This document shows, in pieces, positions 5,092 through 52,722 of a DNA stretch of 64,000 nt. The notes beneath the pieces were generated by a model, which was not told the origin of the DNA, ran no database searches, and saw only the letters and a program-made list of their open reading frames with translations. A program made the translations under genes and the position numbers. The DNA comes from Chara braunii. Its lineage: Eukaryota > Plantae > Charophyceae. Where the stretch lies: assembly GCA_003427395.1 (NCBI GenBank), contig BFEA01000021.1:2244897-2308896 (forward strand), in the 5' to 3' direction. Numbering within the stretch: position 1 is the first letter of the stretch; every line of letters begins with the position of its first letter.

Positions 5092-5142
<51 letters not shown>

Positions 5143-5212
5143 TCGTTTGTTCTTTCTTTCTTTCTTTCATTTGTTCTTTTTTTCTTTCTTTCTTTCTTTC
5201 TTCGTTTGTTTG
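5092..5212. repeat. (TTTC)n microsatellite
   Basis: Directly visible. Confidence 0.95.
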
Positions 5213-5244
5213 TTTCCTCTAACCTTACAATATAGCTGATTCTG

Positions 5245-5660
5245 TCTGGATTCAAACTCATGTTCTATTCCCTAATAGTTACATGTGTGCACCATCAGAC
5301 ACCTGCCTCCGTCACGATTCTAACTCACGCTCTGTGCACCAAGAGTTATGGGTCTCAGCCTGATTTCATCCCGATGCGAACTCACCCGCTGTTATGAAAC
5401 AGTTGCATGTGTACCATTCAGACACATGCCTCTTCCAAATTCTAACTCGTCGCACGCTGTGTTAACAGTTACATCTGTGTACCTTTCAGCAACATATGGC
5501 CCCCCTCCCCACCTGAAGGCTGAGCCCTTCAATCGAATATTCCTCACCCTCCGTTATCAAACAGGTACATGTGTACCATTCAGAAACCTGCTGCCTGCAT
5601 CAGGATTCGAACCCGCGCTCCGTGCGTTCACAGTTACACCTTTTTGTAGCTTCAGCAACA
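5245..5660 (-). repeat. Tandem array of ~6 degenerate tRNA-like (SINE-head) units
   Basis: Recurring B-box-like (G)GATTCRAACYC and A-box-like GTGTACCATTCAG motifs on the plus strand every ~60-95 nt. Units resemble the SINE head at 46911-46975. Confidence 0.6.
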
Positions 5661-6104
5661 TGCGCCCCCCTGTACTCACTGCATTGTCACGACCCCGCCT
5701 GAAGGCTGAGCCCTTCGGTCTGCAGTATCCTCATGCTCAGTGGCAGCAAGGTCCAACTTACACAGATAGCGAGACATAGGGCCTTGATCCCCCTATAGAC
5801 AACACTACATGCATCTGGACATTCTTGACCAGATACATACAAAATGCCAGACTCGTCAGGTCCAGAAAGCATCAAAATGCATGTAGAGTTTGTGCAGTAG
5901 AGCGAAAAACAGTCGCTTAAACGAGGACAGATCAACGGCCAAGGTCTCTCGACGCTCGACGTTGCTCTGCAAAGGCGAAAAAAACAGAAGAAACAAGAAA
6001 AACAATTCGTTTTTTTTATCTTCTTTCTTACAACTCCCCCTGTTCAGAACCTCTTGCGTACAATGCCCACGTGGATGTAGGTTGAGCGGCGGCTGCCCCA
6101 ACCC

Positions 6105-6146
6105 CTGATGAGTCAGTCGGTGAAACTCCGACGACGAAACAGTCTG
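6105..6146 (+). ncRNA. Hammerhead ribozyme, 5'-truncated copy
   Basis: CTGATGA-GTC(AGTC)GG TGAAACT CCGAC(GAC)-GAAA-CAGTCTG. Stem I and the cleavage triplet are missing. Confidence 0.75.
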
Positions 6147-6623
6147 TCACAGCCCCTCGTTTGATGTCCTCTTCTCCCTCCCTCTCTGCCTGCCTACGGT
6201 TTACCGGGCAGCTCTGTTTGACTATATATATTGTCACACTGTGAATCGGAGCGCAAAGGCGGAAAAAAGCAAAACAAAGGAAAGAAAAAAAGTCAGGAAG
6301 GAAAGCCCCACCTGTTCATCACCTCCTACGTACAAGGCCAGCCACGTGGATGACAGGTTGAGCGCTGGCTGCCCCCATCCCCGTGTGTCACAAGGACCCA
6401 CTTGCACGCAGCCAAACCGTGTGTCACAAGGACCCACTTGCACGCAGCCAAAAGGCAAAGAGGTAAAGAAAAGGAGGAAACCAAACCTGACAGGGAAAGA
6501 AAGATAATCCAATTGTCACAAAGCAAATAACACATCCCACAGATCAACATATCTTTTTTTTCTTTTTTTCTTTTTCTTTTCTTCTCTTTTTTCCTTTTTT
6601 TCTCTTTTTCTTTTCTGTTTTCA

Positions 6624-7488
6624 TTACCTGTTCCCACCTCGGCAGATAGGACAGCTACGGTGAGGATGATGTGGATGTTCACAAGGATGCCCAAGGAGAG
6701 CTGCGCCAGCACAGCATTCAGCAGGACGGCTAGCACGAACCATCCCATCAAAACAGTCCTGACAGAGGACATGTTGNCCACATGTCAAAAANACAGCAGG
6801 ACGTTCATCACAGTGCGGCATCATACAGTTCTGATAGCGTCCTTGGGCACAAAAGGGACAACGTATATCTGGGTGATAGGGATGTGTACAATGAGGAAAT
6901 GCTGGACACCCTTCAGAACAGAGCGGCAGTCGCAATAGATTGATTATGGCTATGGCATAGATGATGCATTCCACAGCCAAGGCGCACCGCGTCTCTGTCC
7001 CGACAGGTGTCACACGAGAGTCGGTCAATAATCCAGAATAAAGTATGATTCGACAATGCTCGCAAAAATTCACTCACATCGAAAATGACCTGACTCATCG
7101 TCCCACCATTCCACAGTTCCCACTGGGCAGCTGCACGAATGAGTGCCATATAATGCCCGGGTCTGTGTAAAATACAGGCAAAAATATGAGGATGGTTATT
7201 GAGGTCATCGCCTGGTGTCGCATGATGCATAAGAAGGTGGCAACCATGAAACACTAACTGTAGGACATTTACAGTAAAGCCTCCTGAGGTAGTATAGTTA
7301 CTACCTTCTGCAGGTGGACTATTATGGTCAAACAACAACTGATTTTTCAACAGCGTCAAGCTGATAAGCAATCGTAAGAAATTGGGATGCACTATAACAT
7401 TAAACTGATAAGCCTGTAGGCAGAGATTTGTGGCTGTCAAACCACAAGAATTTGGTAGGTCTGCCCGCAGATCCGAATCGGTCACCAC
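6624..7488 (-). pseudogene. Frameshifted ORF: papain-fold cysteine-protease-like domain plus two RING-like zinc fingers (element cargo)
   Basis: PNSCGL (Cys box), then ILHRPGHYMALIR...WELWNG (His box plus W..N). Next CDTC-x9-CGMHHLC...CPFC and CMMPHC-x9-CxQHVLCQDC...CPIC. The two ORFs fuse if the 4-nt duplication GATTGATT (6938-6945) is removed. Confidence 0.55.
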
Positions 7489-8231
7489 TGGAAAGCCAGA
7501 TTAAGCCAGATGTAATCTGGCGGGGTCCGCGTGTAAAAGACGAACGCCGCCGACGTGGCAGACGAGTTGTCGGTAAGACAAAGAACCCCGCAGATTAGCA
7601 TCAACACGACGTCGAGAGGAAGGGGGACTGGGAGGAGGAGAGAATGAACGAGCCTGCCGACGACCCAATATATAATTGTTTTTTTATTTTATCTTTTTTA
7701 AATGGAAAAGGTAGCCATCGGATTCCATCAGGAGATCAGCTCAGCTCTGTTTGACTATATAGTATAATTGTTTTTTTTTATTTTATCTTTTTTAAATGGA
7801 AAAGGTAAACGCAACCTTATCGTATCCATTGGATTCCGTCAGGAGATCAGCTCTTGACCTGTTTAATAAAAGTTAATTGTCGGTGCCACTCAGCATGGAC
7901 TACGTGATTTTTTTTAATTATTTTTTTATTTCTTATATTTTCCTTCTCCACTCTATCCTTCCTTGGTTGCCTCTCCCCCTTATTCTTGTCCTCCCCCTTC
8001 CCCCCTTCCCCCTGCAACAGCATGGGTCTATTCTTTCTCGTTCTCTCCCATCTTCTCTCCGACGTTCTCCCTTCTCTCCTTGCTTCGTTGTCGCTCCCTC
8101 CATTCTTCGCTATTTTTGGAGTCAAATTGAATTCAATGTAATACAATTTAAATTTCAATTCAAATTCAGTTCAAATTCAGTTCAAATTCAGATCAAATTC
8201 AGATCAAATTCAGTTTAAATTCAGATCAAAT

Positions 8232-10697: not shown

Positions 10698-12730
10698 CAG
10701 AGTCCCTTGACCGATGATACTGAACAAATTATCCACCTTAACCCGGGCTGCGCAGCCCAGGTTAGAGTGTGTTAAGTGGGATTAAACCGTTGAGTATCGC
10801 AGCCCGGGTTAAGGTGGATTATAACGTTCAGTATCATTGGTTAGGGGACTCTGCAGACTGTAGAGGAGGGTACAGCCTCTGCTGATTGATGAGTCGGTGA
10901 AACTCATCAGAGCCCCTCGCTTGTTGTTCTCTTCTCCCTTTCTGTCTACACTACACCAGGCAGTNNNNNNNNNNNNNNNNNNNNNNNNNNNNNNNNNNNN
11001 NNNNNNNNNNNNNNNNNNNNNNNNNNNNNNNNNNNNNNNNNNNNNNNNNNNNNNNNNNNNNNNNNNNNNNNNNNNNNNNNNNNNNNNNNNNNNNNNNNNN
11101 NNNNNNNNNNNNNNNNNNNNNNNNNNNNNNNNNNNNNNNNNNNNNNNNNNNNNNNNNNNNNNNNNNNNNNNNNNNNNNNNNNNNNNNNNNNNNNNNNNNN
11201 NNNNNNNNNNNNNNNNNNNNNNNNNNNNNNNNNNNNNNNNNNNNNNNNNNNNNNNNNNNNNNNNNNNNNNNNNNNNNNNNNNNNNNNNNNNNNNNNNNNN
11301 NNNNNNNNNNNNNNNNNNNNNNNNNNNNNNNNNNNNNNNNNNNNNNNNNNNNNNNNNNNNNNNNNNNNNNNNNNNNNNNNNNNNNNNNNNNNNNNNNNNN
11401 NNNNNNNNNNNNNNNNNNNNNNNNNNNNNNNNNNNNNNNNNNNNNNNNNNNNNNNNNNNNNNNNNNNNNNNNNNNNNNNNNNNNNNNNNNNNNNNNNNNN
11501 NNNNNNNNNNNNNNNNNNNNNNNNNNNNNNNNNNNNNNNNNNNNNNNNNNNNNNNNNNNNNNNNNNNNNNNNNNNNNNNNNNNNNNNNNNNNNNNNNNNN
11601 NNNNNNNNNNNNNNNNNNNNNNNNNNNNNNNNNNNNNNNNNNNNNNNNNNNNNNNNNNNGCAAAATCCCCTCACTGATTACACTGTAAATGATAATCTAC
11701 CTTAACCACAATCAAAGTAGACTATCACTCACCCACACCAGATGGAAAACTCTATATATATCATCGCATTAATATATATGTACTTTGCAATATATATACA
11801 TATATATATCTTCACAGAGAACTATGTATATTACACTGGCAGCAAAGATTGGCCAACGACTACCGACTTCCTCGGTCTACACATTATTTCCTGAATAGTT
11901 CGCGGGAAGCAGGGGGAAGAGAGCGTGGGGGGAGGGGGGAGAAGAGGAAGAAATGAGGAGCGTGGGGAGAGGGGGGAGAAGAGGAAGGGGGGGGGGGGCT
12001 GCTACCTTCCTTATATTCAGAACTATTACCTTTTTCGGTTTCCAGAACCAAAAGGTTCTGTTTTCTTAAATTTAAAAAAAAAAAAAAAAAAGAGCACTTC
12101 CCGTTAATTGGAACTCTACACGAAGACATCTACAAGCACATACCTTACTTCCTGCATACATAGTCAGATTCTTGTCAGATACATACGTGTCCGCGTACAG
12201 AAAATGCAATATATATCGTCACACCGTGTATCGGAGCGCACAGGCGAAAAAAGACAAACACAAAAAGGGAAGTGGGAGAAAGGAAAGCTCCGCCTATTCA
12301 TCACCTCTTATATGCCACACGATATTTAACTAACCGGCGCATTGGATGCATCTGGACAAACATACGTGCGTGCGTACATTAACATATCCAGTTGTTTATA
12401 CATGTACATATGTACGTGTATAAATGTACATGTATGTACATATACACGTATAAATGCATGCATCGTGGATGCATCTGGACAAACATACGTGCATGCATAC
12501 ATTACCATACCCATGTATTTACACGTATAAATGCATATACCGTCACATAGCTAACAGACTACCGGTAGGACCGCGTGTACGAGAGACACGGAGAGAAGGG
12601 ACAGGAGAGAGAGCGGGGAGAGAAGCAAGAGGACCAGTTTTCGTTTATTGTTTTTGGCGGGGGGGGAGGAAAGGGGGGGGGGGGGGGGGGGGGGGGGAGG
12701 AAGGAGTTGAATATACATGTCTGAGTGTAT

Positions 12731-12852
12731 GGGCCTCGCTGCACTACTCTCGAAATGCGCAAAACGAGAGTGAATCTTCCGCTGGAATATGGAAAGATAC
12801 ACCGCCATGATTTTTGTCCGTTGTGCATGTCGAGAGTAGTGAGGCGAGGCCC
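12731..12852. mobile_element. PIF/Harbinger (Tourist-like) MITE
   Basis: TIR GGGCCTCGCT.CACTACTCTCG and a 3-bp TSD TAT/TAT. A second full copy at 27101-27224 also has a TAT TSD. Fragments at ~4090, 15330-15490, 16100-16450, 17020-17250, 17590-17652, 21100-21590, 44305-44490, 59030-59140 and 62745-62820. Confidence 0.8.
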
Positions 12853-16516: not shown

Positions 16517-17860
16517 GNNNNNNNNNNNNNNNNNNNNNNNNNNNNNNNNNNNNNNNNNNNNNNNNNNNNNNNNNNNNNNNNNNNNNNNNNNNNNNNNNNN
16601 NNNNNNNNNNNNNNNNNNNNNNNNNNNNNNNNNNNNNNNNNNNNNNNNNNNNNNNNNNNNNNNNNNNNNNNNNNNNNNNNNNNNNNNNNNNNNNNNNNNN
16701 NNNNNNNNNNNNNNNNNNNNNNNNNNNNNNNNNNNNNNNNNNNNNNNNNNNNNNNNNNNNNNNNNNNNNNNNNNNNNNNNNNNNNNNNNNNNNNNNNNNN
16801 NNNNNNNNNNNNNNNNNNNNNNNNNNNNNNNNNNNNNNNNNNNNNNNNNNNNNNNNNNNNNNNNNNNNNNNNNNNNNNNNNNNNNNNNNNNNNNNNNNNN
16901 NNNNNNNNNNNNNNNNNNTGTGTGTGTGTGTGTGTGAGAAAGACTCGGAGAGAAAGAAAGAAAAATTTCCAACCATGCACGCAGAGAGATAGAGAGAGCC
17001 TACTTTCATCGATAGGGTGAGCAAAATCGGAATGAATCTTCCACTAGAATATGAAAATATACACTGCTTTCCAACCATACACGCAGAGAGATAAAAAGAG
17101 GCTACTTTCGTTGATAAGATGAGCAAAATCGGAATCTTCCACTATAATATGGAAATATACACTGCTTTCCAGCCATGTGCGCAGAGAGCTAGAGACAGGC
17201 TACTTCCATCGATAGGATTTTCATGTTCTAGCGGAAGATTCATTCGATTTTTCTCATTTTTCATAGTTGTACCGGTTAGCAAGACATGATTTATTTTAGG
17301 AAATGTACAATTTACGGACTACTACAGGAGCACCCAAATTCATCCCACTAGAAACATTTCTACTCTATTTTTTTTTTCACGGCCTATAGTTGGGCAAGTA
17401 CTGATGGTTTAACGAACCGGCCCGTAGTCGTCTCCATCTGAATGGTGGGACTGGTATATGTGTCAAGTGTGCGCTCGACGGTACCCCCGCCGTCCTGGCT
17501 GTACCCCCATGCCCTGTGTGGCATTAGTAATTTCGGTCTGGCCGTAAAAGAGGTCAGATACGTCCAGGAAAGTCGTCATGTGAGTCGTCCCCATGTTCCT
17601 AACGGAAGATCTATCCTCATTTTGCACATTTGGTGAGTAGTGGAACGAGGCCCTAAATGAAGGGGGATGAGAATTCCAAATTGTTAAAATTTCCCTGCCA
17701 TCGCAGTCTGGTGAACAGAGGGGCGGCGACCGGGTGGGCTAGCGCCGACGTGGGAGGCTGACGCGCAGGCTAGGGCGTTTGCCTGCTATACCCATCCGAC
17801 TTCTGAAGGCTCACGGTGACCACTTTCTTTCGTCTACGAGAGCGAGGCTTAGGACAACAT

Positions 17861-18382
17861 CAACATAAAATTTTTCCAGAATTAAATATTCATTCTATAG
17901 TAAAATTACATTCTAAATCTCAAATTTTTATTCCATCTTAAAAAATGTCATTCCACTTTTTAAAATTTTCGTCTTACTTGAGAACTTTCCTTCCAAGAAT
18001 GGGGTGTCCCTTCTTATTTGAATAGCATGCTAAAGATGGAATGAAAGTCTGGATGAGTTCATGAAATATTTTAATTGGACTGTCATTCTAAGTAAGGGTT
18101 TTCAGTCATAAATAGGTTAATCCAATTTATATTAGAAAATATTTGTTGTAGTAAAATGAAAGTTTAATTAAAACATTTCATAAAGTCGTTCAGACTTTCA
18201 TTCCATATTGAACAAATAGATATAGTTGGAATGAAAAACTCATATTTAGACGGGAACTTGTCAAATAAAACTGGAAATTTTAGAATTGGACAAACATTGG
18301 AATGATAATTTATAAATATGAAGGATTTTTTTTTTATTGAATGTTTTTTCAACTTTCATTTCTCGTGGGAATTTTTCTATTG
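17861..18382. mobile_element. ~520-bp non-autonomous DNA transposon (CAAC...TTG ends, 2-bp TSD)
   Basis: Imperfect TIR CAACATAAAATTTT(T)CC / GGAATTTTTCT(A/G)TTG with TSD AT/AT. Closely similar copy at 60073-60593 with TSD TA/TA. Confidence 0.8.
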
Positions 18383-20380: not shown

Positions 20381-20647
20381 TTGAAACGCGGGCTGAGGAG
20401 TTCAATGTGCATGTTAGTTGGTGGGTGTTTAGCCTATATTGTGAGAGGGTTGAGTGTGATCATGCCTGTTGGGGCCCGAAAGCTGGTGAACAATTCTTGG
20501 GCAACGCGGGCCAAATGAAACTCTGGAGGATTCTTGCGACGATACTGATGTGCAAATCGTTCGTCGAACTTAAGTATAGGGATGAAAGATTAATCAACCG
20601 TCCAGTAGTTAGGTTCTCTCCAAAGCTACTCAGGATCATTGGAGTTG
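20381..20647 (+). pseudogene. Degenerate nuclear LSU (25S/28S) rRNA-derived segment
   Basis: TTGAAAC..GAGGAG, GAGTGTGATCATGCCTGTTGGGGCCCGAAAGCTGGTGAAC, GAAACTCTGG, GATACTGATGTGCAAATCGTTCGTC, GTATAGGGATGAAAGATTAATC and CTCAGGAT are collinear with the conserved LSU domain II. Confidence 0.85.
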
Positions 20648-21832
20648 TCGAAGCTACAAATGTTAATCTGCGTTAAGTACTAGGAACATATGCGTTGGGT
20701 GGAGGTCGATTGATCGATCGAAAGAGAAGGAGTGAACCTAAACGTGGATCCGAGCCAAGTACATTCGAAGACGATGATGACGTAAGGAAGGAGGAAAGAT
20801 AAGGATGGCGAAGTAGAGATGGCATAACTAACCCGATCCTTAACAAAACCAGTCAAACTTAAGCCTTAGGGCGGAATGAGGGTTTTGACGATGGGCGAGT
20901 AGAATGGCAAGGGTAGATTTGGTGTTAGAGTGATGACTAGGAGAATATGGTATTTAGGGGTTGTGTGGGTGTTACGAAGGATATCGGGAAGGTGACGGGA
21001 AGGACGGCACCAGCAGGAGGAAGAAGAGCAACAACTGAGAAGAGGTACGCACTTGGTAGTTGTGTGAGGGACAAGTATTGAGAGGGGAGTGTGTCTCCCC
21101 ATGTTCTAGCAGAAGACTCACTCTCACTATGCACATAAAAAGAACGGCGGAGTAAGGCCACGAACGATTGTTGGAGACCGATCATCTTACAAGCATCTCC
21201 CGTTGCTAGTGGAAGATCCCTTCCCACGCTGCGGTTGAACAACGGGCACGATAGCAAAATAGGTGCATGCGCGTGCGAAGAGGGAGCTGAGCATGACTCA
21301 CTTGGTTACGCCACTGAAATCGCATGGGCTTTTGCACCGTGCAGAGGTGTATCTTTCCAATTTTTAGTGGAAGATTCATCCTCATTTGCGCATTTGATGG
21401 GCGGTGGAGAGAGGTTGTTGTAGCACACCTTTCCTCGTCATCGTGACAAACGCCTTGATCCTAGTGTTCATCGCCGTGGCGCTGTTGCTCCGGTGATCGG
21501 GCTGTTATGGGCGGTCGTATTCATTTGGTGGTGTATCTTTCCATGTTCTAACGGAAGATCCATTCCCATTTTGTACATTTGGTCAATGGTAGAGCGCGCC
21601 AGTGTTGAGGTGCTGATTGCCTGAGGACCGGCTTCACCAGCGTGATCGTAGTGGGGCTCCTCACTCAGACGTCGCTCTATGTTACATTTGTCATCCTGGT
21701 GGCTATTGGGATCTTGCCATTTGTAATAGTGCTCATTTCCAACGAGCAAGGGTGCTATGCTACGCTACGGGAGGAAGAACCATGATAGTAGAACGGGGGA
21801 GAAAATAGAGGGTGAGCAGAGGCAAGAATCAC

Positions 21833-21902: not shown

Positions 21903-23474
21903 ACGGGATACTTACCAGGTGCCTAGTCTTTGTAAACGTGGAAGTAAGTATGCCATCGTGTTGTACTGGCAGGCGAGCACCTGACCCGGTTATCAGTCAG
22001 GTGCATTGGAGAAGGGTGAGGCTTACGTGGGAGAAGATAAGGGTGAGGGGAATCGAAGAGAGGAGGTACTACCGAGGAGGCTACCGCTGATCACAGTGAC
22101 GGTCATAATTATTATTCCAATTTCAACATTGTTCACGATCATTATCGTGGTTTTGACCTCGTTCTGCGAAGTGCTCGTTAAGACAAGATAAAGATTGTGG
22201 GGTTTGTCCTCCTCGGTATCTAAATCAGTCTTTTTGTTATCATGTGTGTCACTTGGATACTGTTGCTTGATGTGCTGATGTTTCGGGTCGAGCTAGACTT
22301 TGCCATAAAATCGAGGTGAAGTCAAGTATAGATGGCGGGCAGGAAAGGTTGCTGCTAAAAGGGTGCTACCCGCAAGATTGAGGTTGTTCCCGTTCCTTCA
22401 TGAGTTACTGTAGGTTCCCAGGCCATTGCCATTATGTCCTTTTACTACTGCTACTGTCGGTGTTAGTAATTGATGTTGTTTACCAATTACGACCAGCAAC
22501 TACGGACTGATTGGTCATTTCCTTGGTGCTGTCATGGATGAGAGATCAATGTTTGTTGCTCCCTCACACCAGGGTTTGTTGAGTTTTGCTGCGTCGTTAT
22601 ATTGCGTTTGTTGTTGTGCATTATGTTGTGATTCCCTACAACTGATTTGCATGACTGACCTTGCTGTGCATTTGTTGTGCCTTTTGCCTCGTCAATGCTT
22701 GCAAATTATTGAACACACCGTCTCGACTGAGTTTTACAACTTTTTATTAGCATTTTTCAAATAAAGACGGGTGTAATCCTCTATTTGAACACAATCCTTC
22801 TATGTTGCGTAACGACGCCTTCGTCTGAAGTTGGAGTACAACGGCTTGAAGGTGTGATCAAGTTTCTGCAGGAGGGTCATTGTTGCCAAAGTGGAGAGTT
22901 GTGCATGTTGCTACACGATTTACGACATCGACTTGACCTAGACTAGCTGGCTTCTTACATGTTTTGGTCACCTTTGGGGGGCCCTCAAACGCGTCAAGAT
23001 ACCAAGGCCCTCTCGAACGAGTTGAGTTGTCCCCCTCTTCTCTCGAGAGTCAGACCTTTTTCTTTCTCCTCTTCTTAGTCCAAAGTCTAGTCTGAGTTCG
23101 GAGAGGAAGACCGCAACCCACAAGACCGCAGTAAGACCTTGTGGGAGATCCACCAGCCGATTGCAGAAGCTCCGTCGAAACTCAGGAGGAGTTATGGGGG
23201 TGAGGAACAATCTGGTATAACTTGTTATGTCTTGTGTGAACCCAATAATCTCTTAATCATTACACCTATTTACGCTGATTGCTCTGTATATGTGCATCCC
23301 TATGGATTTTGCTTTATTAAAAAAATAATTCAGAGTAAGTAAAGAGAATGCATTTCTAAAAAAATCATCTACTTTAGTATTTGAAATTCAGAATGAAAAA
23401 GATAAATTGGGGAAAGGTGGAAAAAATGTAGTTTTGCATGCGTTCATGGGGTTCCCTAAGGGTTAAACAACTTG

Positions 23475-24320
23475 AATGTGGCTGCGGTTAGGCCTAACCA
23501 CTTTGTTTATTCTATTTTTTTTTGCAAATAGACAATGTGGCTTCAGTCAGGTCTAATTCTTGTAATATTTATTGAGCTGTCTTCCTTACAACCTGACAAT
23601 GTGGCTTCAATCAGATTTCAAGTTGACTGTTGTATTGTCTTCTCCTCTTTGCAGTCACATAATGTGGTTTCAATCATGTCTGATTGCCATACCTCTGTAA
23701 TTGTGATTCGTGCAACTAGGCAATGTGGTTTCGATTTGGCCTAGCTGACCATGTTATGTCGTTATGTTCCTTACGACAACCAGACAATATGGTTTCAGTC
23801 AGGTCTGGTTGTTGTTCTTGTCATAATTTATCTCTTGCATAAAAATACGAGTTGGGTAATATGACTTAGGTCAGACGCAACTACTTGTTTTTTTCTGAGG
23901 GAGGTTTCGACTGATGACTATGTAATGTGGTTTCGGTTTGGTCACACACACAAAATAAGAATATGAAAATATAACCTTTTATATAAATATATCATACTTC
24001 TATTATTGAATAAAGTTAGTCAGACAACGTGACTTCAGTTTCGTCTCACTATCACAAAAAGGAAGAGAGCACTTAATTAAGAATATAATGTGTAACCAAA
24101 AACGGACTGAGCAATGTGGCTTCGGTTTCGTTCAACCTTAGTCTTCAAAAAATTAAAATGTTCAGATAATTATTACAACTTAAACATTAAACACTTGGCA
24201 GGGCTAGATAACGTGACTTCGATTTGGTATAGCGATCTGCCTAATGAAGAAAAAAGTAGTTGTGCCATTTGTTTGTGTATACAAAGACAAATGTTAAGCA
24301 ATGTGCTTTCTGTTTGACTT
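23475..24320 (+). repeat. Array of ~12 short conserved motifs (RACAATGTGGYTTCRGT..) with divergent spacers
   Basis: Motif period ~63 nt, then ~95 nt. Confidence 0.75.
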
Positions 24321-24594
24321 AACATTTTTATGCCATATGTAAGTTAGGGCGTTGGGGTTTATCCAACTGAGAGTAAATAAACTATTTATGTGATAAACAA
24401 CTTGGGATTTTTTGTGAGCGTACTTATTCATTATAGTGCGGACTTGCATGCGGTTGAATGCGAGCTCTACTTGTTCTAAATCTTGGTTTGGATAGGTAGT
24501 TGTTTTAAATGCTCGCAGTGTGGTGGAGCTATAAGAGTTAATTCAATTTTTGCATTCTCTGAGTTAAGTTTATTTATCATATTTGGCTTTATGT

Positions 24595-25150
24595 TTTAAA
24601 GGAAGTGCTACCCAATTTTTTGTAAATCCAAGGAGTTAGTCAAATTCAGTCCTTACAAAAATCAACTTTTGTCAAAGTTTCATATTTGGCTTAGTAAAAA
24701 ACTGAGAAACCTACTTTTACAGGGGAGGTGCTGTCCAATTTTTCAGTAAATCGAAGAGTTAGACAAAAATTAACTTTATTAAGTCAGAGTTACTTCTAGA
24801 TTTTGCATTTACTTTTGTAAAAATTTTCAAAAGACACCTATCTAGAGGGAGTGTTGCTAAAATTTATACAAATCTAAAAAAGTTAGTTAAATTTTTCCCT
24901 GACGAAATTCAAGTTTTATGTGACTTGGTGTAAATATGAAAAACCTACTGCTCTAAAGGAGATGCTGTTCAAATTTTTACCAAATCAAGGAGTTAGACGA
25001 AAAATTGACTCTATAAAATCAAAAACCACTTTCAGGTTTCATATCCAGTCTTATATAAATTATGCAAATACACTTTTCTTATGAAAAGCGTTGGTGAAAT
25101 TTCCAAAAATCTAGAGTAATTATAATATCTTAGAACTTGAAGAGTTTGAC
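24595..25150 (+). repeat. ~120-bp tandem subrepeats (5 units)
   Basis: GGGAGTGCTGCCCAAATTTT..AAATC.AAGGAGTTAG at ~24601, 24724, 24848, 24958 and 25085. Homologous array at 33045-33545. Confidence 0.8.
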
Positions 25151-25872
25151 AGTCTGCCCTTGCTTAGAGGAGATACTGTCGAACTTCCTGACATTTTCAA
25201 ACAGGTATTAGAGGTGAGGTAGGAAGGGAGTAGTATTCCATACTCCCTCAAGCATAGGTTGGGCACTGACTTGTGATGTATTGAATGTCATTTTCATTCA
25301 TATTGTCTCGTGACTTGACTAACTTCGAGTTGATTCTACGAGGATCATCTTCTATTATCTTCTGATATCAGGTCGGTGTCCAACTTAACTCTAACTCATT
25401 CTCACGACTCAACCTTGGACCTTAACCCCTGTGAGTTAAAATGTTTCTTAAAGTTTTTACCCGGACTTTTATTAAATGACAATTTAAAAAAAACTGAGTT
25501 TTTTCTTTTGGAAGGATGGACAAAGGTTGGGGTTTGTGTGAATAAGGCAAGGGGTGTGAGTGTAGAGAGTGGTTGAAGTTGACCCCGTGTAGTTTGTAGT
25601 GTGTCGATGTTGAATCTTTGGTGTGATTGCATTTATGTTTTATGAGTCGAAGTCCGGGTTTGACTTTGTATAGGATCATGTGTATATTTTGAAGGAAATC
25701 ATATTGTGATTGTGAGTGTGATCGCCTCGTGTTTTATAACCTCGTTATATTTATATTTTGTATATACGCACGGTCTACTTTGATAGTTCGTAAGGATTGA
25801 ACAATTTGTGTCGAGAGAAAATGAAGGTTTTTTGTTTTTTTTATTTTTTTTTAATATTATATATATATATAT

Positions 25873-26724
25873 ATAGTTGAACGTTGAGATCCGTGGTGGT
25901 TGTCAAAATCAAAACCCTTTAACCTGTTTTCATACTGCCGAAGATGGAGCCCCGCTTTTAGGATTAGAGGTGTTTGGCCGCGACTAAGGGTTGAAGCCCG
26001 TCTACCCCTCCTCTCCGCAATGTGCAGAAGAGGGCATGTCTCGCAATCGCACTTGCGATTGTCTAATGTCAAGAGATTAACTCTTCAGGACGTGTGTCAG
26101 CCGACACTTGAGTATCGAATGTGACCCTCAAAATTATTGAGGACCGCATGGTTGTGGGCACCACATAGTACATCATCATTTCGACCTCTTGTGTATTCAT
26201 GCATAGATGGTCGATGTGATAAAGTCTACGTCGCCACAATATTTATTCATAGTCTCGTGCGCAACACCCACCTAATTCTTTCATCGAAAATTATAAGTCA
26301 AATGTGAACCAGGGACTATGAACGATTTACGTATGAAGCTTGATTTTTGTTTTTATGAAGTGTGTCACGTGATTAGATTGACCGTCTTAGTCGACTGACG
26401 TCAAATCGCATTCGGGAGATCAACGCCTCAGGCAACGATTCGCGCACGGGTCCGATTTGGGCGTTATCCGCACGTACCTCCTATGCTACAGCGAACGAGA
26501 AACGCCCTCGACCAGGCCATCGCTGCGATTTCATATGAAAAACTTCTGTATATGGTTTGGTAGCTTAGCGGGGATACGCCCACCTAAGGGATGGTGACAA
26601 CTCCTATGGATGGAGTACCTCTCGTAACTCTATCCTTTCGTAGGGGTTCACGAAAGGTATGGCTGACGCACTCCACCGGAGCGCCGACACTCTGTGACAG
26701 TGCCCGGCAAAATCCTGCGTGACG
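25873..26724 (+). ncRNA. Putative large structured RNA block (copy 1)
   Basis: Diverged paralogue at 34298-35207 with conserved motifs and compensatory changes in several hairpins. Confidence 0.55.
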
Positions 26725-28001
26725 TGGTCGAGAGACTTCCCTTGAGGGACTAATACATTTGACAACATGGTGTTTTAAGTTTTTGGAATTTTAGTTTTTT
26801 TGGTTCGTAACTATAAGGGCAAAACTCTGCTTATGAATGAATTTCTCTATGATTGATCTAAGCTTTAGGTACTAGGCCCAATTATAATAAAAATTTCAAG
26901 ACGTGAAAAAAAAAAAGATAAAATTCCCTGCCATCTCAAAGAATTACAAATCGCTCACTTCTTTGGAAGCCTTCAGACCACTCTTTGATTACCCATGAAG
27001 TTCGTCAGAATTCCAAAATATTTTGAATTACCTTGGGTCCGTCAAATATATCGGAATTTAAAACCATTATGAACTACCTTTGGCACATCAGTCAATTTAT
27101 AGGCCTCGCTCCACTACTCACTAAATGTGCAACATGAAAATGAATCTGCAGCTAGAACAATGAGAAGATAAATCACCATATTTTTCATTTTTTTTGCGTG
27201 GGGGTCAGTAGTGGAGCGATGCCTTATAAATTTATTTGGGCATTTTTATTTTTATATATTTTAAACGGGCCCTGTGTTCAAGGCTTACATCAATCAAGTA
27301 ACAAGTCAACTCCATGTTAAGAGCCACCGACCTCGAACCCTAACCTCAGGTTGAGCCTCGCTCCTGCAGTAACTCACATCCGAGAATTCCCCCTTAAAAA
27401 ATAAAAAAACTACACTATATTCTCCTCTTAATTTGTTTTTTAACCTTTCACTACCAATGCACCTAAAAAACTACTTGTCAGCACAAAATCCCTAAAATCC
27501 CTAAAAGGTCTACTCAGCTATATAAAAAACTCCTAAAAACTACACAAGAGTCATTTCATGGGTCAGCGGTCAGCAACCCATTTGTCTTCCTCGCAGCATA
27601 ACACACCCTCATCACAACCGTATCGGACTAGCAAGATAACTTGCATACATTCATAATTAGGTTGCGAACATGCACCAAGAGTCGAGACCAACATGTACTT
27701 ATACGGCCGAACCACACCAAGTGTCCCATCTCACGAAGCAAGGGCATAGTAGTTTGTATAGGGGGTTCAGCGAACGGGTTCAGTAAGGCACACAAGTGGC
27801 ATGTAAGAGAGTCATAAGGTCAACTACCATTGATCGCATGTACCTACCTGACCTTACTACCATTAGCACCCCCGCCATGTAGAGATAACTCAAGTCGGTA
27901 TAACACTGCTAATGTGGGTGGGAGAGGGGAGATGAGGGAAGGAGCAGCAATTGGCCAATGCTCGTCCGTGACGATACTGGCTGACCCCTAGCCAATTTAG
28001 A

Positions 28002-28073
28002 CCGCAAGTAGCTCAGTTGTTAGAGCAAAGGAATAAAAATCCTTATGTTAGTGGTTCAAATCCACTTCCACTA
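28002..28073 (+). pseudogene. trnF: Degenerate mitochondrial-type tRNA-Phe (NUMT)
   Basis: GTAGCTCAGTTG-TTAGAGCAAAGGA[ATAAAAA]TCCTTATGTTAGTGGTTCAAATCCACTTC resembles plant mitochondrial trnF(GAA). The anticodon loop and acceptor stem are damaged. Confidence 0.7.
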
Positions 28074-29615: not shown

Positions 29616-32329
29616 CTTTTTGGGGACCGGTGGGAGGTTGTCGCGGGGTTGACTATGTGGTGGGGCTGTCCCAGTGGCTTTTCCCATGGGACTCCTCCCA
29701 AACTTTGGCTTTCGAAGTTCGTATTTGACTACTGGCTACTGTCATCAAGATCTGCACCAGGGACCGTCCCGCTTTGGCGCTTGCTGGAGGTACCGATGGT
29801 CGGGACCGTCCCGCTCTGGCGCTTGCTGGAGGTACTGATGGGCGGGCCAGTCCCCTTCTACCCGTCGTGGCCTAAGAGTTGTCGTGACGGCCTAGCACAG
29901 GCCGCGGCTCAGCACAGTCCACTTCCGCTGCTGTTAGGCTCGGTGGCGGCGTTGTTACCTACTCCTTGGCAGGGTCTTGATCTCCACGACCACCGCCTGC
30001 TGTCTGTGCGGTTTATCATTGTCAGGCATCCAGGCACTAGCGTACAGTTGACACCGGGCAGGGCGAGGTCGGAGGTCCCAGTGTGAATACACTCTGGGCA
30101 AGGTGAGGCCGCAGGCACTTTGGTGGAGGCTCCGAGAGATACAGACGTGCTAATCGAGCCAGATCATAGCTGGCTCTCCTCGACACTCCCCCTAAGACAT
30201 TTAGAGTTTTACTGAGCTCTGCCCGACCACTGTGGGATCAGCCGCTGCCGTGGAGCTGCGCTAGCAGTGGAAGAGCGAACCAGGATGGAATTCCGCGCGG
30301 GATGCATGCAGGGCGGAGGAGAGCGAAGAGGGCAGAGGAGAGCAAAGAGGAACGGAGGAGACAGCAGGGGGAGCGGAGCAGTAAGAGAGCAGGTGGAGGA
30401 GAAGAAACGGGAAACAAACCTGGACGTGATCCCCGACAAGGTTTGTGCGAAAACGGAGCAAGCTATAGCGGAGCAAGCGAGAGAAGAAGGGAGAACGAAT
30501 ATCTCCCTCGATCCGCGACCAAATCGAGGGAGGGAAGAGTCGGTTTGGGGGTTATGATGGAGGGCGACTTCAAAGGTGAGGTTAGTTTTAGTGATAAGGT
30601 AGTAGAGAGAGAGATTAGTAGAAAAGTTGGTGCGCGGGAGATGGCGGAGCGAGGGAAGGAGAATAAGGAAAATGGCATAGCTTAGTCGATTGTGGGTGGA
30701 ATCGGGCAAGGGGGGGCTCGATTTGGAAGTTTTGGGCCCGAGCGAGTCTATCAGTAAGGTTAGTTTTGCTAAAAGATTAGTAGGTTAGGAGATACGGAGA
30801 AAGAGAAATGTGCTCAGCTATGGCGGGGGAAGAGATCGAAGGAGTAAAAAATGGAGAATTCTACTTGAGTCCTTGTGAAACCGAGCGAAGGGAGGCGCAA
30901 AGTAGGAGAGTCGAGGTCGGGCGAATCTGATGGCGGTGTTAGATAAAGGCTTTAGTGGTTAGTTTCTGTGGGTTGTGATGTATGGTGTGCGCGGTGTGAA
31001 GGTAGCGCGGGTGCACGTGGAAGAGAAGAGGACAGCGGAGTGAGTGAAAGTGGTCGGGATTCGAGCCATGTGTACTTAAATGACAGGAAGGGAGGGATCA
31101 GAGAAAGGATTCGGACGGATGTGGACGTAGGGACGGACTGCGTTCGGTCAAAGCAAGAAGGAAAAGAAGGATGTAAAGCGGTATTCACCTCGAATAGCTG
31201 ACGATGCGAGATGAATCGAATGATGAACTGTAACACCCGACTGCTTCGCTGTTGCGTGGTTGGGGCAGACTAGCAGTGGGGTTGTGGCCTGACTGTGGAT
31301 CGCCAAGGAGCGGAAGAAGCCCCATTTGCATCAGGGTGGTCAAGATTGTTGACTGGAGATATTGATACTGCGGCCACCACTGATCATGGTTGTCATGAGA
31401 GAACTGCTGCCAAGTTTTGGTCTGGTGGAGCTAGGAGAAGCAGTTGCTGCCATGTCGGAGTCTCGGTATTTGCTGCTGCTGTTGCTTTTTGAGTTCACAA
31501 TGCACCTTGCTGTGCACAACTGCGGTGTCTTGACGCTGCGTACGACTGTTGTGGGGGCTATGATTTTTTGAAAGTCGTTGCGTTTCCCCTGAGCTTCGAA
31601 TAGAGCACGAGGGTGTGTTCTATTTGAATGCAGCCTTTTCTAGGTCGTGTTACTGCAGTTTAGTCAGAAGAAGAAGTTGTGTGACGTGGGGAAGTGGTCG
31701 GATTTTGCAAAAAGGATTACCATTGCGATCTGGAGGATTGTCAGAGGGTCGTAACTCCGCACTTGGCTGCATTTTGACTTCGAGTTGGGCCATTTTATTG
31801 CGTTTATTGGCCACCATTGCGGGACTCTCAAGCGCTTGAAGGAATCAAGGCCCTCTCACGCGAGTCTGAGCGCACCTCCCTTGTATCTGAGTGATTTAAC
31901 TTTTCTATTTCTGCCCTTCTTACTCTAAGTCTGATCCTGGTGACGAGAGGAAGGTGGCAAGCGGGCTTGCAACCCGTAGGACAGCAGTAAGACTCTGTAG
32001 GGAGTTTGCCCACCGATTGCGTTCTGTCGGAACTCAGGAGGAGTTCTGGAGGCAGGGAACCGAGAGGTAAATGTTTCCTCCTCCTTCTGTAAACCCAATT
32101 ATAACCCTCATCTGTACATCTTGCTATGATTGACTGAGTGAACTGCATGCATCCCTACTTTGACTTTCAGTTTGACTTCAGGACATAAACCAGACTTAAT
32201 AAATGAATTATGTGCAAATTTAGTTTCAATTTTTTGACTGACAACAGATTGTGGGATTGCATCTTGGGGAAGGTTGGGAGGAAGACAGTTTTGCTTGTGT
32301 CTGACTGGGTCAATCAAAGGCTGAGCAAG

Positions 32330-32770: not shown

Positions 32771-34297
32771 ACTATAGCTTATCACAAACTAAAGAGAGTA
32801 TTAATTAAGAATAAACTTGTGGTAAGAAGGGGCAGGCTGGATCTTGAGCTAAAGATGATCGATTCAGTTATATGCTACCTTAAAAGACTAAGTGCAGATA
32901 ATTATATAAAATTGAGATACTTAAACAGTCCAGGACGACTAGGGTAACATAGTCATATGCTCAAAGAAGAGAAAGGTCAATTTCTGCATTTTCTGGGATT
33001 TTTTGTTATACTTGGCTTTGTATAAATTTTGGTTAAGCTACTTTCTCTACGGGAAGCGCTGCCAAAATTTCTACAAAACCAAGGAGTTAGTCCGATTTTG
33101 TCTTTTCAAAGTTCAACTTGTCTGACTTTTATACATGACTTCGTAAAAATCTGGAGCATCTCCTTTTCTAAAGGGAGTGCTGCCCGAATTTTTGCTAATT
33201 CAGGGAGTTAGATACAATTGAACTTTGAGAAGTCAAAGCCATTTTAAAATTTTGAACTTAGTTTTGTATGAAACTTGAAATAACATTTTTCTTAAGGGAG
33301 TGTTGCCAAAAGTTTTGCCAATCTAAGGAGTTAGTTAAATTTGATCTTTGTTGAATTCATGTTTGCTCTGGGTTCATGTCTGACTAGAAAAAATCTGGAA
33401 GACCTTTTTTTATAAAGGGAACGCTGCCCAAATTTTTGTTAATTCAGAGAGTTAGATACAATTTGACTTTGGAAAGTTTAAGATTATTTTTGTTTTCATA
33501 TTCGGGTTGTACTGCCGAAATTTTCTTAGTGTAGAAGAGTTAGATTATATTTCGACAGGTGGCGATTCTGGTAATCCACTCTGTATGCGGGAGATTTTGC
33601 CATAGGTCTACCTTTCTTGGGTATTGACTTAGAGATAGACCTAGACTTGGTTATCAAGAGAGTCTTGAGTAAGAATGTGCTATGGAGATTTATTCCCCGT
33701 ACACTGATGATTTAACTTGGACATTGACCTGTCTTATGATACATGTCTTCTCTGAACATTCGATCCAGGATCTGGATTAGATTCAACTTGATCCTACAAG
33801 GATCATCTTCTGTTATCACTGATAACAAGTTGGTTGGTTGATCGCCGACTCGTCGGCTCACGACACAACTTTGCTTACACCTGTACCTCAACTTGATTGC
33901 CTCAACCCTGAGATTTTGATATGTTTCTTTGAGGGTTTAAACCAAACTTCTTTCAATGACCATTATAAAGAACTTATGAGATTTATGAAAAATTGGACTA
34001 TGACTGGGGCTTGAGTGTGTAAGGCGTGGTGCGAGTTAAAGGGAGCAGTAAAGTTGACCATATTGGTGCATGGCAATGTGGCGTTCGTCTATGTCTGTGT
34101 TTTATACAGGTTAGTGTCTTGGAGCCTGTGTACAACCCTTACTTTGGAGGCAGTGAGAATGACAACCACGTAATGCACGATCTGCATACTTGATGGGTTT
34201 ATGTTTCCCCCTTCTTCTATTTTATTTCGAGTTCTGTTTGGATATATGAGTGTTGGATGTTTATTTATATACTGATTGGTTTTGCTTGTTAATTTTT

Positions 34298-35207
34298 ATA
34301 GTTGGACGTTGTAGTCTGTGGCAGCCACCAAAGTCAAACCCCTTCGAGACCCTGGATGAGAGAGTTGGTCTCCATGCAATAAGAGACGATTGCCATCATA
34401 GGTATGAACCTGTGTACCACCTAGTCTCCACAGGGTGCAGAAAAGGGTGTGGTTTTCAACCGCACTTGGCGGTTGTCCAGCGTCGAAAGATCAATCCCTC
34501 AAGGCGTGTGTCAGCCGACACTTGAGTGTCGAATGAGACCCTCGAGATTAACGAGGACCGCATGATTATGGACACTGCATAGTACGCCATCATTGCGACT
34601 GCTTGCGCATTCATGTATTGCTAATCGATATGAGAAGACTCTGCGTCCACGCGGTTTTATACTAAGTCTCGTACGCGATGCCTATCCGATTTTCGCATCG
34701 GAGAAGTTATGGGATGGCTACTAAGGGACTAGGAGTGTTGTCGCGTTGTTTGTTCTGAGTCGTTCTGTATATATACGTGTGCGTGCGTGTTTAACTTTTA
34801 TGTTTTTAGAGTGGTGTACGCGTGGTGTGTGGGATGCGTCCTAGTCGACCGACGACGGGTCGCGTTTGGGACTTCAGCCCCCCAAAACGTCGGATCGTGT
34901 GTGGGTCCGATAGAGGAGTAAAACTGCGAGTACCCCCTATGCTACAGCGTACGAGAAATGCCCTCGGCTGGTCCACCTCTGCGATCGCAACTGATTAGCT
35001 TTCGTACTGTGGACTGGTAGCTCGGCGGGGATACGCCCACCGAAGGAAGGTGACAACTCCCGTAAGGTGGAGGTAAGTCGTGCCTCACGTAGACCCTATT
35101 CTGTCGTAGGGGCCTGCGAGAGGTATAGCTGACGCACACGGTCGGAGCGGCTTGCGGAAACTCCATATGTCTTCGCGACGAGGATTAAAACCAACTCCTG
35201 CGTGACG
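34298..35207 (+). ncRNA. Putative large structured RNA block (copy 2)
   Basis: Paralogue of 25873-26724. Confidence 0.55.
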
Positions 35208-35689: not shown

Positions 35690-36400
35690 CTGAAGTTACA
35701 CGGGAGAAAACGAAGAAAGAAGAAGAAGAGCGCGCTAAGAGAGAATAAGAAGAACAAGAAAGGCGAGCACATGATAAGAAAGAAAGAGATGAATTTTAGG
35801 CCCAACCTGCTTAAGTGATGTTTACAAAGTTGGACTTAGTTTGTGAAGCTTCGATAGAGAAACGCAATCCTTGTCAGGACAATCAAGATATCAACCAATT
35901 GAAGAAGGAGATCGAGATACTGAAGGGGGTTAAGTTGCCAACCACGTCCACGACGAAGAACATTCAACATAGTAATGAATTGATGTGCAGGCTAATGTGT
36001 GAACAAGATATTATGAAGACAAAGCTCGAAGATGCCTTGACAACTCAGAAGAGATTCAAATCGTCGGAGAAGAAAGTCGTAGCACTACAACAGATGAGGG
36101 ATAAAGCCATGACGAAGGTTGCAGAATGGAGAGTTGAAGCAATGAGAACACCCAATAAACATGGTTGTATCGTCATCACGCCAAGTTCACATGGAAAATT
36201 GTAATCTCGCGCGACTCCTGTAAAGAGTCTAGGGGTGTTGAGACCGTCGTGGATTAAAATGACTAATATATCGCTACCAGTTGGAAGTAAAAACTCTACA
36301 AGAACTGCAATTGAGGGAGCTCGATGCTCTAAAAGAGACCATGCGGGAACTAAAGAAAACGAAGGACACTTATGTGAGAATGAAGAGTGAAAAATGAAAA
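35690..36400 (+). pseudogene. Decayed coiled-coil ORF, probably the N-terminal ORF of a retroelement
   Basis: K/E/R-rich heptad-like frame ending ...EWRVEAMRTPNKHGCIVITP, broken by stops. Lies just upstream of, and co-oriented with, the RT remnant. Confidence 0.45.
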
Positions 36401-40337: not shown

Positions 40338-41230
40338 GTTTTTTTTTTTTTTTTTATTACAAGAACTCCCACCAGTGTTAGTGGTGCTGATAAGAGCAGG
40401 CACCACTAGCACTTGGGGAGAGGCTCCATCTATTGGTGGGGAGCATCACCTGCTGGAAAACGGGTCCAGCGTCCCTTATACAAACTGAGATTGGAGTACA
40501 TATGACAATTGAGATTCCTGCCAGGATCGATTACCCTTGGATCCAGGGGATTGACTGCGTAGGATATTGGAGGGGGGGAGGGAACCTCTTCACCTTGAAT
40601 CCGGCGCCAGGCACACATCTACATTCTAGTCCCTCCCCCTTTTTTCAACAAGTACTGTAGATATGGTGGCCTAACCTCCCCACCATATCTTAGGTGGATC
40701 GGCCAGGTGTGAGAGGGGGGTAGGGAGGCCGGTTCTGCATCCAGGGGGCGGCTGGGGCAAACACCTAATCCTCCTATTCCCTATCTCCATCCGGACAGGT
40801 CCCACCAGGATTATGGTGGACGGGCTCCTCAGTGTCTCGGCCATACCACCTCAGCTCGACCAAGGTATTGTTTGATGGGGGGATAAAATCAGGGAACTCA
40901 GGGACCGCGGGGAGTGGGATGTTGCTGGGGATTTCAGTCCATTTATGGAAGAGCAACCGATAGTCCCTCTCTGCTTTATCCAAACGATCATTGCCATCAA
41001 AGAGCCAGCCATCCCATTGAATCCATGCAATCCGTCCCCCCTGCTCCCCCCCAACCAGTCCATGTAGAATTCATTTAGTTTTTGAGTAATGTCTGATCCT
41101 TTTGTGAGAGCTCTCATCCCTTGTACCGCCTTTTTCCACAAAGCTCTAATTGCTGTTTCAATCATGTCTTTAATCATTTCAGTTGTTTCGCCACTGCTTC
41201 CCTCCCAACCCTAAATAAGTTGGTTGTGAA
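40338..41230 (-). mobile_element. 5'-truncated L1-clade LINE (ORF2 C-terminus plus 3' UTR plus poly(A))
   Basis: IKDMIETAIRALWKK...FYMDWLGG aligns with VKELIEMELTQRWRK...FCTGWLGG at 45290-45420. Conserved tail motif and T-run at 40338. Confidence 0.75.
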
Positions 41231-43610: not shown

Positions 43611-44894
43611 AGGCATGGGTTACTATAATCAAAGAAAACAAAACTGCTGTCTGGTGGATTGGTTGGAATTCAGTATTCAATTTGGTGGGGATACTCCAAC
43701 AACGACTTTTCTTACCAAGCTCTGGACATGATTGTGGTCAGATTCATCCAGGTTCAGCTGTAGATAAGATCTGATACATTGAACAAAGTGCTAGTGTGAG
43801 TATGCCATAAGACATGTGCAGCAGGGAGTGTGCTAGGGAGAATGATGAGGCCAGGTGGGAGGGGCCTGTGAGTTGGGGACAAAAAAAGAGAAGGAATGCA
43901 TCATCCCCAGAAAACGGTAAGATGCATCCGTTGGTATGTATAGTAACGGATGCATATTGCCATGCTCTGCGTGAAGATGCAGTCGTACTTTTTCCGTTCG
44001 ACAGTGGTGTGGCGAGGGCGGGCCTGAGGGCAGCCAGCCCAATTGGGAACTTGGATGCAACCGAGAATCGGAAGAACCCAATCCGCCGCTACACGAGCAC
44101 GTGGGCTGTCAGCATTGCACACAGTGTTATGGATCTCCCTCGTGAGTGCACTTAGCCACTGGATTGGTCATTGTGAATTTGTGGCCCAATGATCAGTATC
44201 CGACCGTCCATTTCTAGGGGTGAAAAAAGGAGTCCCAGTTTCCAGCTCAGCAGTGAGGTGATTAGGACAGTTTTACTCCAAAATCTTCAGATTTGTGAGA
44301 TGATGGGCCTCGCTCCACTACTCTCGAAATGTGATTAGGACAGTTTTACTCCAAAATCTTCAGATTTGTGAGATGATTTGGGCCTCGCTCCACTACTCTC
44401 GGAATGTGCAAAACGAGAGTGAATCATCCGCTAGAACATGGAAAGATACGCTGCCATGATTTTTGTCTTTTGTGCATGAGAGAGGCCCGATGTTGGGAAA
44501 ACTAAGGGCCTCCCCCCACACCACTGTCGAAACGAAAAGAGAAGGAATGCATCTGCCACAGGAAGTGGTAAGATGCATCCATTGCTACTCATAGTAAGGG
44601 ATGCATCTTGCCCTTCTCCACGCCAAGATGCATTCGCTCTTTTTTCGTTTCGACAGTTGTGTGGCGAGGCCCTAAGACACCAGCCAATGGCATCCCCATT
44701 CACTAAGGTGCTCATGTTGTATTGGAGAGGTCCCATGTTCAAGTCTGTCTTATGTACAATTTTGTGTGCACCATACTTAACAGTCTATCGGGGATAGCCA
44801 TTGGTCATTTTTACTGTATCTAGACTGAAAGTTAAACCAGATACAGGCACGATGACTGTACATTCTATTTGTGTAAAGATGCTAGTGGCAGATG

Positions 44895-52688: not shown

Positions 52689-52722
<34 letters not shown>

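Follow-up and report, generated by a model that had tools for sequence, protein, structure and literature searches.

A conserved non-coding 3′ region marks a very abundant interspersed repeat family in Chara braunii that may spread as a non-autonomous retroposon

Introduction

In stringent-type LINEs and their SINE partners, such as eel UnaL2 and UnaSINE1, the reverse transcriptase (RT) recognises RNA stem-loops in the 3′ tail, as it does in the 3′ UTR of R2. Hominid SVA elements, 2–3 kb in length, represent another type of retroelement, namely the multi-kb non-coding composite. In plant rDNA, the IGS/5′ETS combines subrepeats with a TATA-like start rich in AT, followed by a stretch of higher GC content with many hairpins, and plant Pol I initiators read TATATA(A/G)GGGG. 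For the charophyte Chara braunii itself, the published literature describes Chlamys Penelope-like elements as very abundant.

Here, we followed up an initial annotation of 64,000 nt of C. braunii DNA (contig BFEA01000021.1, positions 2,244,897 to 2,308,896; hereafter the window, with positions counted from its first letter). This annotation had singled out ~850 nt as a structured block conserved by covariation between two diverged copies, here called A and B, and had proposed either a selected RNA structure near the 3′ end of an element (an RT-recognition, packaging or catalytic domain) or a 5′ETS-like region. In our own reading, held with about even confidence, the block represents the 3′ region, non-coding and best conserved, of an interspersed family of very high abundance, which behaves like a non-autonomous retroposon mobilised by an enzyme of the LINE type.

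Results

Two diverged copies of one repeat

Alignment of the two blocks confirmed them as genuine, collinear homologues. MAFFT yielded 836 aligned columns, 573 of them identical (68.5%), the differences comprising 164 transitions and 99 transversions, with 90 gap columns. When the window was compared with itself by blastn, 25992–26683 paired with 34405–35149; further upstream, weaker but collinear matches were obtained (22964–23208 with 31807–32060, and 24601–25010 with 33052–33468), and tblastx traced the collinearity back to ~19.1 kb on the side of copy A and ~29.6 kb on that of copy B. The block is therefore no discrete unit: the A/B homology continues upstream to about 19.1 kb, spanning more than 5.5 kb and including a scrap of LSU rRNA. 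Identity per 100 columns ranged from 0.58 to 0.81 in the block vs. 0.44 to 0.68 in the 3 kb upstream, and was clustered (longest identical run of 23 columns, P = 0.04; five longest runs together, P = 0.016). Over the first 120 nt past the TATAG at the block start, identity was 49% and the structure conservation index (SCI) 0.19. Though the divergence is dominated by transitions, CpG is not depleted, observed/expected ratios being 1.16 in 25873–26724 and 1.15 in 34298–35207. All motifs listed in the initial annotation were found in their places (Table 1).

Table 1. Features of the two homologous blocks and of the insertion that carries copy A (window positions)
Feature	Copy A	Copy B	Strand	Remarks
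Block	25873–26724	34298–35207	+	A: more decayed copy, near 3′ end of retro-insertion A; B: nearer family consensus, no A-tail or target duplication seen
Insertion A, 9.2 kb	from 17686–17702 to 26920–26935			Bounded by target duplications
Target-site duplication, 16–17 bp	5′ copy AAAATTTCCCTGCCATC 17686–17702; 3′ copy AAAATTCCCTGCCATC 26920–26935			
~122-nt subrepeat array	24601–25025	33052–33484 (four units)	+	Upstream of block
Hairpin cluster (island 1)	26036–26146		.	Predicted folds; depth 51,000–53,000
Island 1, CAAYCGC hairpin	CAATCGC-ACTT-GCGATTG, 26044–26061	CAACCGC-ACTTG-GCGGTTG, 34457–34475		
Island 1, mutually exclusive hairpins GTGTC/GACAC and CGACAC/GTATCG	26094–26117			CGACAC-TTGA-GTATCG at 26102–26117 (A)
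Island 1, CCTCR hairpin	CCTCA-7nt-TGAGG, 26126–26142	CCTCG-7nt-CGAGG, 34540–34556		
Candidate three-way junction, ~105 nt	26474–26577	34930–35035	+	Predicted folds of both copies
Invariant linker CTATGCTACAGCG.ACGAGAAA	26481–26502	34937–34958	+	Two matches in window, none in shuffles; bin of highest depth
Junction P1 (predicted)				GTACCYCC..GCT pairs with AGC..GGGGATAC; joins the two most conserved islands
Junction P2 (predicted)				CGAG-loop-CTCG hairpin
Junction P3 (predicted), 10-bp stem	26511–26561 (26511–26520 with 26552–26561)		+	Variable loop
GCG-GGGATA-CGC	26568–26579			
CACC..GGTG	26581–26596			
Unique AT-rich tail	26725–26905		+	Depth 16–18 from 26789; AATAAA at 26886–26891
A11 tail	26906–26916		+	Sequence reading

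Coding potential and known RNA families

Stop-free stretches in the block reached at most 91 codons in both copies, and copy A contained no open frame above 80 codons. As tblastx similarity was equal in all six frames, with no frame-specific conservation, the two copies are conserved at the nucleotide level. A word-based protein search with the stop-free frame across the most abundant island of the family (see below) found nothing, and a Pfam scan of 20 ORFs within or beside the elements returned no match save one unrelated RT. The latter, an ORF with an RVT_1 domain at 56375–57091 on the minus strand (E = 4e-25), was the sole recognisable retroelement protein among the ORFs scanned; tblastn detected no remnant of it in copies A or B. 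About 600 nt downstream of copy B lies a 129-codon ORF (35815–36204, plus strand) whose charged, coiled-coil-like product had no Pfam match.

Scanning of both blocks against Rfam 15, whose families cover group I/II introns, RNase P/MRP, SRP, rRNA, ribozymes and LINE/SINE 3′ elements, gave nothing at gathering thresholds or at E ≤ 1, in agreement with the failure of the initial annotation to match the block to group I/II introns, RNase P/MRP, SRP or rRNA. At E ≤ 10, the blocks alone yielded chance-level CRISPR-repeat and CrcZ scraps in non-homologous places. Neither a hammerhead nor another Penelope hallmark was detected in the block by the Rfam searches. A tRNA/Pol III origin of island 3, which contains the A-box-like TAGCTYAGCGG, was considered and rejected, as neither ARAGORN nor Rfam called a tRNA.

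Copy A lies close to the 3′ end of a retro-insertion

Copy A lies within the 9.2-kb insertion (Table 1) and, as initially proposed, near the 3′ end of the element, being followed by an A-tail and one of the two target duplications. LINE-mediated retroposition is diagnosed by an A-tail together with a target duplication of about 7–20 bp, and copy A shows both, thereby carrying the mark of LINE-type target-primed reverse transcription; neither was seen for copy B. The high-copy part of the family stops between about 26724 and 26788, and ahead of the A-tail lie ~180 nt of unique sequence, as would fit 3′ transduction, the transcript having read through into DNA flanking its source copy. With this unique sequence in front of the A-tail, and with copy B showing neither tail nor duplication, the LINE-type footprint speaks for copy A and not for the family.

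Upstream of the block, tandem subrepeat arrays with units of about 63, 80 and 122 nt were recognised, as was a decayed LSU rRNA scrap (20398–20691, corresponding to positions 671–1449 of the Rfam LSU model). The block had been described as following subrepeats and starting at a TATAG. Both elements of this description are present, but some 850 nt separate the last of the ~122-nt subrepeats from the TATAG.

A TATA-like stretch lies downstream of the subrepeat arrays (25860–25877 in copy A; 34290–34301 in copy B). This order, in a family of very high copy number, would also be expected if the block were part of an LTR, that is, a U3 with subrepeats and TATA followed by an R-U5 leader, in a lineage of abundant LTR retrotransposons present mostly as solo LTRs. 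Conserved islands would then represent promoter elements and leader RNA signals, and copy A a LINE-mediated retrocopy of an LTR-containing transcript. We consider this rather improbable: neither element holds a second copy of the block or an internal gag-pol, reading of the 3′ boundaries revealed neither TG..CA ends nor a primer-binding site, and the A/B homology exceeds 5.5 kb, LSU scrap included. Moreover, a 16–17-bp duplication with an A-tail is not the footprint of an integrase, for which 4–6 bp would be expected.

As for the surroundings, the target of insertion A was a small TIR/MITE-like element. Inverted repeats of 61 nt (17592–17652 and 27102–27162; 79% complementary) flank the insertion, and related ends occur at 12730–12852, 44379–44478 and 59040–59146. 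Insertion A itself houses, near its 5′ end, a younger insertion from another family, namely a 522-nt repeat (17861–18382, with a counterpart of 90% identity at 60073–60593) carrying internal inverted repeats (18028–18090 and 18152–18214). Between the two copies, 28009–28066 on the plus strand matched the Rfam tRNA model (43.8 bits, model positions 8–63) with no ARAGORN call, and is probably a tRNA-derived fragment or a SINE head; a weak ALIL-pseudoknot match overlaps it on the minus strand. Elsewhere in the window, a full-length U6 snRNA match (61.8 bits) was found at 2266–2379 on the minus strand.

The block belongs to a very abundant dispersed family

Four public runs under one organism label were aligned to 23900–27100, the region of copy A, with a minimum likeness of 80%. 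Each DNA run contributed about 7,000 aligned contigs, most of them less than 90% alike to copy A. Single-copy depth was 16–18, as measured in the flank past the insertion and in the last ~130 nt before the A-tail (26789 onward). Depth amounted to 53,000–65,000 at 25505–25611, 51,000–53,000 at 26040–26146, 211,000–247,000 at 26468–26574 (the most abundant part of the family), 72,000–88,000 at 26575–26681, and 344–447 in bin 26682–26788. Peaks thus lay roughly 3,000 to 15,000 times above single-copy level, in summed depth that aggregates unphased variants and is no copy number. The block belongs to a huge dispersed non-coding family of about ten thousand copies in the genome, newly recognised here.

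Depth peaks coincided with the linkers that the initial annotation had called invariant and with its conserved stems. At the linkers, summed depth (not copy number) was ~12,000–15,000 times single-copy, identifying them as islands conserved across the family; a claim derived from two copies was thereby upheld at ~10^4-fold read depth. Such family-wide conservation argues for constraint in the life cycle of the element itself. Peak depth also climbed in the 3′ direction, from ~100–500 (23.9–24.2 kb) via 5,000–8,000 (24.2–25.4 kb) and 13,000–65,000 (25.4–25.6 kb) to more than 200,000 (26.5 kb). This rise is suggestive of 5′-truncated copies, bearing in mind that the depth islands, and through them the gradient, depend partly on the alignability of the decayed copy A.

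Each well-supported variant position was covered by more than 100 distinct contigs, and at nearly all of these positions the family majority agreed with copy B and not with copy A, which marks copy A as the more decayed of the two. Consensus strings from the loose ends of contigs, both RNA and DNA, likewise matched the sequence of copy B. Since loose ends at island borders continue in B-like sequence, the islands are embedded in one family. A separate short SINE behind the depth peak was considered as well and dismissed, as contigs run into B-like flanks on both sides. Differences between the family and copy A were dominated by transitions, and at 26114, where copy A has an A, G accounted for 166,533 of the 168,800 depth units of the family. 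A and B are old, dead copies in neutral decay, as seen from the dominance of transitions and from the break at 26114 of a stem that is invariant in the family.

Oligo-dT RNA reads were few, derived from both strands in proportion to DNA copy number and mostly from other copies, and no pile-up of RNA ends was observed at the TATAG or elsewhere in 23900–27100. In one RNA run (X6), reads leaving copy A continue in letters identical to copy B over 34986–35080 (agreement 0.89–0.95), so that copy B or near-identical copies are transcribed in oligo-dT RNA. Searches with two conserved islands as exact patterns found nothing in metagenome contigs, prokaryote genomes or viral contigs, and nhmmer profiles of the block retrieved only copies A and B within the window.

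These data bear on the proposed 5′ETS-like alternative, in which the family would be a decayed rDNA spacer (IGS subrepeats, a Pol I start at the TATAG, and 5′ETS) that was retro-copied and amplified. The order of LSU scrap (20398–20691), subrepeat arrays, TATAG and conserved block would suit such an origin, as would the occurrence of ATAGTTGRACGTTG at the block start of both copies. However, the LSU match is internal (model positions 671–1449) and does not cover the 3′ end of the LSU, a search of 17–40 kb for further rRNA gave nothing even at E ≤ 1, and no 18S follows either copy. At the TATAG, the initiator G-run is absent, depth is near single-copy (in a bin partly masked as repeat), and RNA 5′ ends do not pile up. 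The family is also dispersed and heterogeneous, with thousands of distinct contigs, unlike homogenised rDNA. Of the origins considered, this one is the least favoured and, in our judgment, very improbable; the 5′ETS-like alternative thus found no support.

Compensatory changes occur at chance level

Central to the initial annotation was the claim that ~850 nt are conserved by covariation, exemplified by two compensatory changes. Both double changes are genuine, copy A having T-A where copy B has C-G in the CAAYCGC hairpin, and A-T where copy B has G-C in the CCTCR hairpin, but they do not go beyond chance expectation. RNAalifold predicted 198 pairs for the whole block in the two copies, 22 of which were changed on both sides. 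When columns were shuffled within conservation classes, the resulting null alignments contained 19.9 ± 4.1 compensatory pairs, and 12 of 40 shuffles reached 22. Cross-prediction, where one copy is folded alone and the substitutions of the other are tested against this fold with a spectrum-preserving permutation as null, gave similar results on the plus strand: 36% of changed pairs were kept vs. 35% in the null, and double changes numbered 11 vs. 11.3. By subregion, nothing survived 24 tests, and the candidate junction (see below) was also at chance. Of 120 shuffled alignments, 10 contained a helix scoring at least as high as the best one here, the 10-bp stem P3 (P of about 0.08), and 66 of 500 pair shuffles in the 3′ domain reached the observed value, the latter being a powerless control with two rows. 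All these tests rest on two copies and have low power; in shuffling and cross-prediction alike, compensatory pairs stayed at chance level, and the covariation claim was not borne out.

Both flagged double changes are paired transitions at symmetric sites of perfect palindromes, and the change from CCTCG..CGAGG to CCTCA..TGAGG equals two CpG-to-CpA/TpG transitions. Double CpG decay in a palindrome looks compensatory in half of cases, and may explain such a change. With CpG observed/expected ratios of about 1.15 in copies A and B alike, strong CpG decay is not evident. We therefore rejected it as accounting fully for the double changes, and the verdict rests on the shuffle tests. Regarding the conserved stems, the hairpins as such are present, but the CGACAC/GTATCG stem is broken in copy A, owing to the private A at 26114. 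Stems shared by A and B are mostly inherited palindromes and not structure maintained between the copies. More generally, two-copy “covariation” in palindrome-rich, transition-dominated repeats is no evidence of structure.

A modest structure signal and a candidate three-way junction

The thermodynamic signal of the block is small and limited to the hairpin cluster (25993–26146) and the stretch 26470–26605. For the whole block, minimum free energy (MFE) z-scores were –2.66 and –3.02 on the plus strand and –2.42 and –1.55 on the minus strand (20 shuffles each). Consensus folding of the plus strand yielded an energy z of –5.8 and an SCI of 0.57, compared to 0.46 ± 0.02 in shuffled alignments; on the minus strand (z of –2.6, SCI 0.50 vs. 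0.47) it was barely better than shuffled. Two of 14 windows of 120 columns stood out. The first, 25993–26110, did so on both strands, i.e. because of palindromes, whereas the second, 26487–26605, did so on the plus strand only (SCI 0.85, z –3.1; SCI 0.63 on the minus strand). In line with this, MFE z-scores of the hairpin cluster were –2.76 (A) and –2.75 (B) on the plus strand and –2.87 and –3.09 on the minus strand, a similar stability that indicates palindromes with no strand preference.

Within the second stretch, copies A and B folded separately gave the same predicted architecture, a candidate three-way junction. Its z-scores were only –1.45 (A) and –1.96 (B) on the plus strand, and –0.03 and –1.10 on the minus strand. 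In P3, A and B differ at six pairs, each of which remains paired, two by double change, such that all 10 pairs are kept despite eight substitutions. The family majority has C at 26520 (98%) and the loose-end consensus G at 26552, which would make a C-G pair in place of the T-A of copy A. As the 5′ arm of P3 is G/U-rich, transitions opposite it keep pairing automatically. The junction is an unproven candidate, and we treat it as a lead, not a finding.

These observations could be taken to mean that the block, or the junction plus the hairpin cluster, is a structured RNA under selection, maintained by compensatory change for RT recognition, packaging or processing. The junction, recovered from each copy folded alone, coincides with the most conserved island of the family; P3 retains 10 of 10 pairs, to which the family majority adds a third pair set (C-G at 26520/26552); and the SCI of 0.85 in 26487–26605 is specific to the plus strand. 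This is possible though unlikely, given that compensatory pairs remained at the shuffled level, that the best helix was matched in 8% of shuffles, and that cross-prediction was at chance for block and junction, the latter with z-scores of –1.5 to –2.0. The G/U-rich 5′ arm of P3 and the equal stability of the hairpin cluster on both strands speak against it as well. For the selected RNA structure proposed initially, family-wide conservation of the linkers argues for constraint; its covariation basis fails, and nothing points to catalysis.

Discussion

In our preferred reading, the block is the conserved 3′ region of a non-autonomous retroposon. The conserved islands might then be cis-acting signals on the plus-strand RNA of active source elements, as suggested by conservation limited to islands in thousands of copies, the 3′-ward rise in depth and the plus-strand bias in folding. 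Most likely they would serve as a 3′ region recognised by the reverse transcriptase or its partners, possibly through the ~105-nt junction and the hairpin cluster. In the case of copy A, a transcript would have read ~180 nt beyond the family end to a downstream AATAAA and would then have been reverse-transcribed onto a nicked target, giving rise to the A-tail and the 16–17-bp duplication. This reading shares the direction of the initial proposal, not its stated basis. Self-BLAST and nhmmer revealed no autonomous partner or RT gene with the same 3′ region within the window, and the LINE 3′ ends in the window (40339–40610 and elsewhere) are unrelated to the block by BLAST and nhmmer.

A more specific version appears rather unlikely to us: the final ~250 nt (26468–26724), and the junction especially, would constitute a new RNA motif kept across ~10^4 copies for binding by a Chara reverse transcriptase, and the 26036–26146 cluster, with its mutually exclusive GTGTC/GACAC/GTGTC pairings, a second functional module.

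If the family does consist of retroposons, fixed 3′ ends would be expected near the CCTGCGTGACG motif, together with variable 5′ ends. For repeat annotation, the block represents an uncharacterised, abundant non-coding family of a large charophyte genome, and its invariant linkers are useful as diagnostic islands for masking or classifying this family. Should an active retroelement turn out to use the 3′ islands as its recognition module, the enzyme behind a sizeable part of the genome would be easier to identify, a step forward, if a modest one, in the study of transposons in streptophyte algae.

Compared with known systems, the locus resembles a plant rDNA IGS/5′ETS in its subrepeats, its AT-rich TATA-like start and the GC-richer, hairpin-rich stretch that follows. 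It differs in that no 18S lies downstream, in that the copies are dispersed and diverged and not homogenised tandem units, and in that the block lacks an initiator G-run, with the subrepeats ~850 nt away from the TATAG.

With hominid SVA, there is no sequence relation; the element belongs to another kingdom and measures 6–9 kb vs. 2–3 kb. The likeness is one of organisation, the C. braunii element being a multi-kb non-coding composite with an LSU rRNA scrap, several tandem arrays and a conserved 3′ unit, and copy A carrying an A-tail, a 16–17-bp duplication of the target and what appears to be a read-through tail at its 3′ end.

Unlike the UnaL2 and R2 tails, the block family has no partner LINE or shared tail within the window, the conserved region is longer (several hundred nt) and stops ~180 nt short of the A-tail in copy A, and enzyme recognition of the block is a candidate role only. 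Like those tails, the block is non-coding and conserved, and occupies the 3′ end of a family that is retro-inserted, very abundant and apparently 5′-truncated, where short conserved hairpins stand amid variable sequence and predicted structure is biased towards the plus strand.
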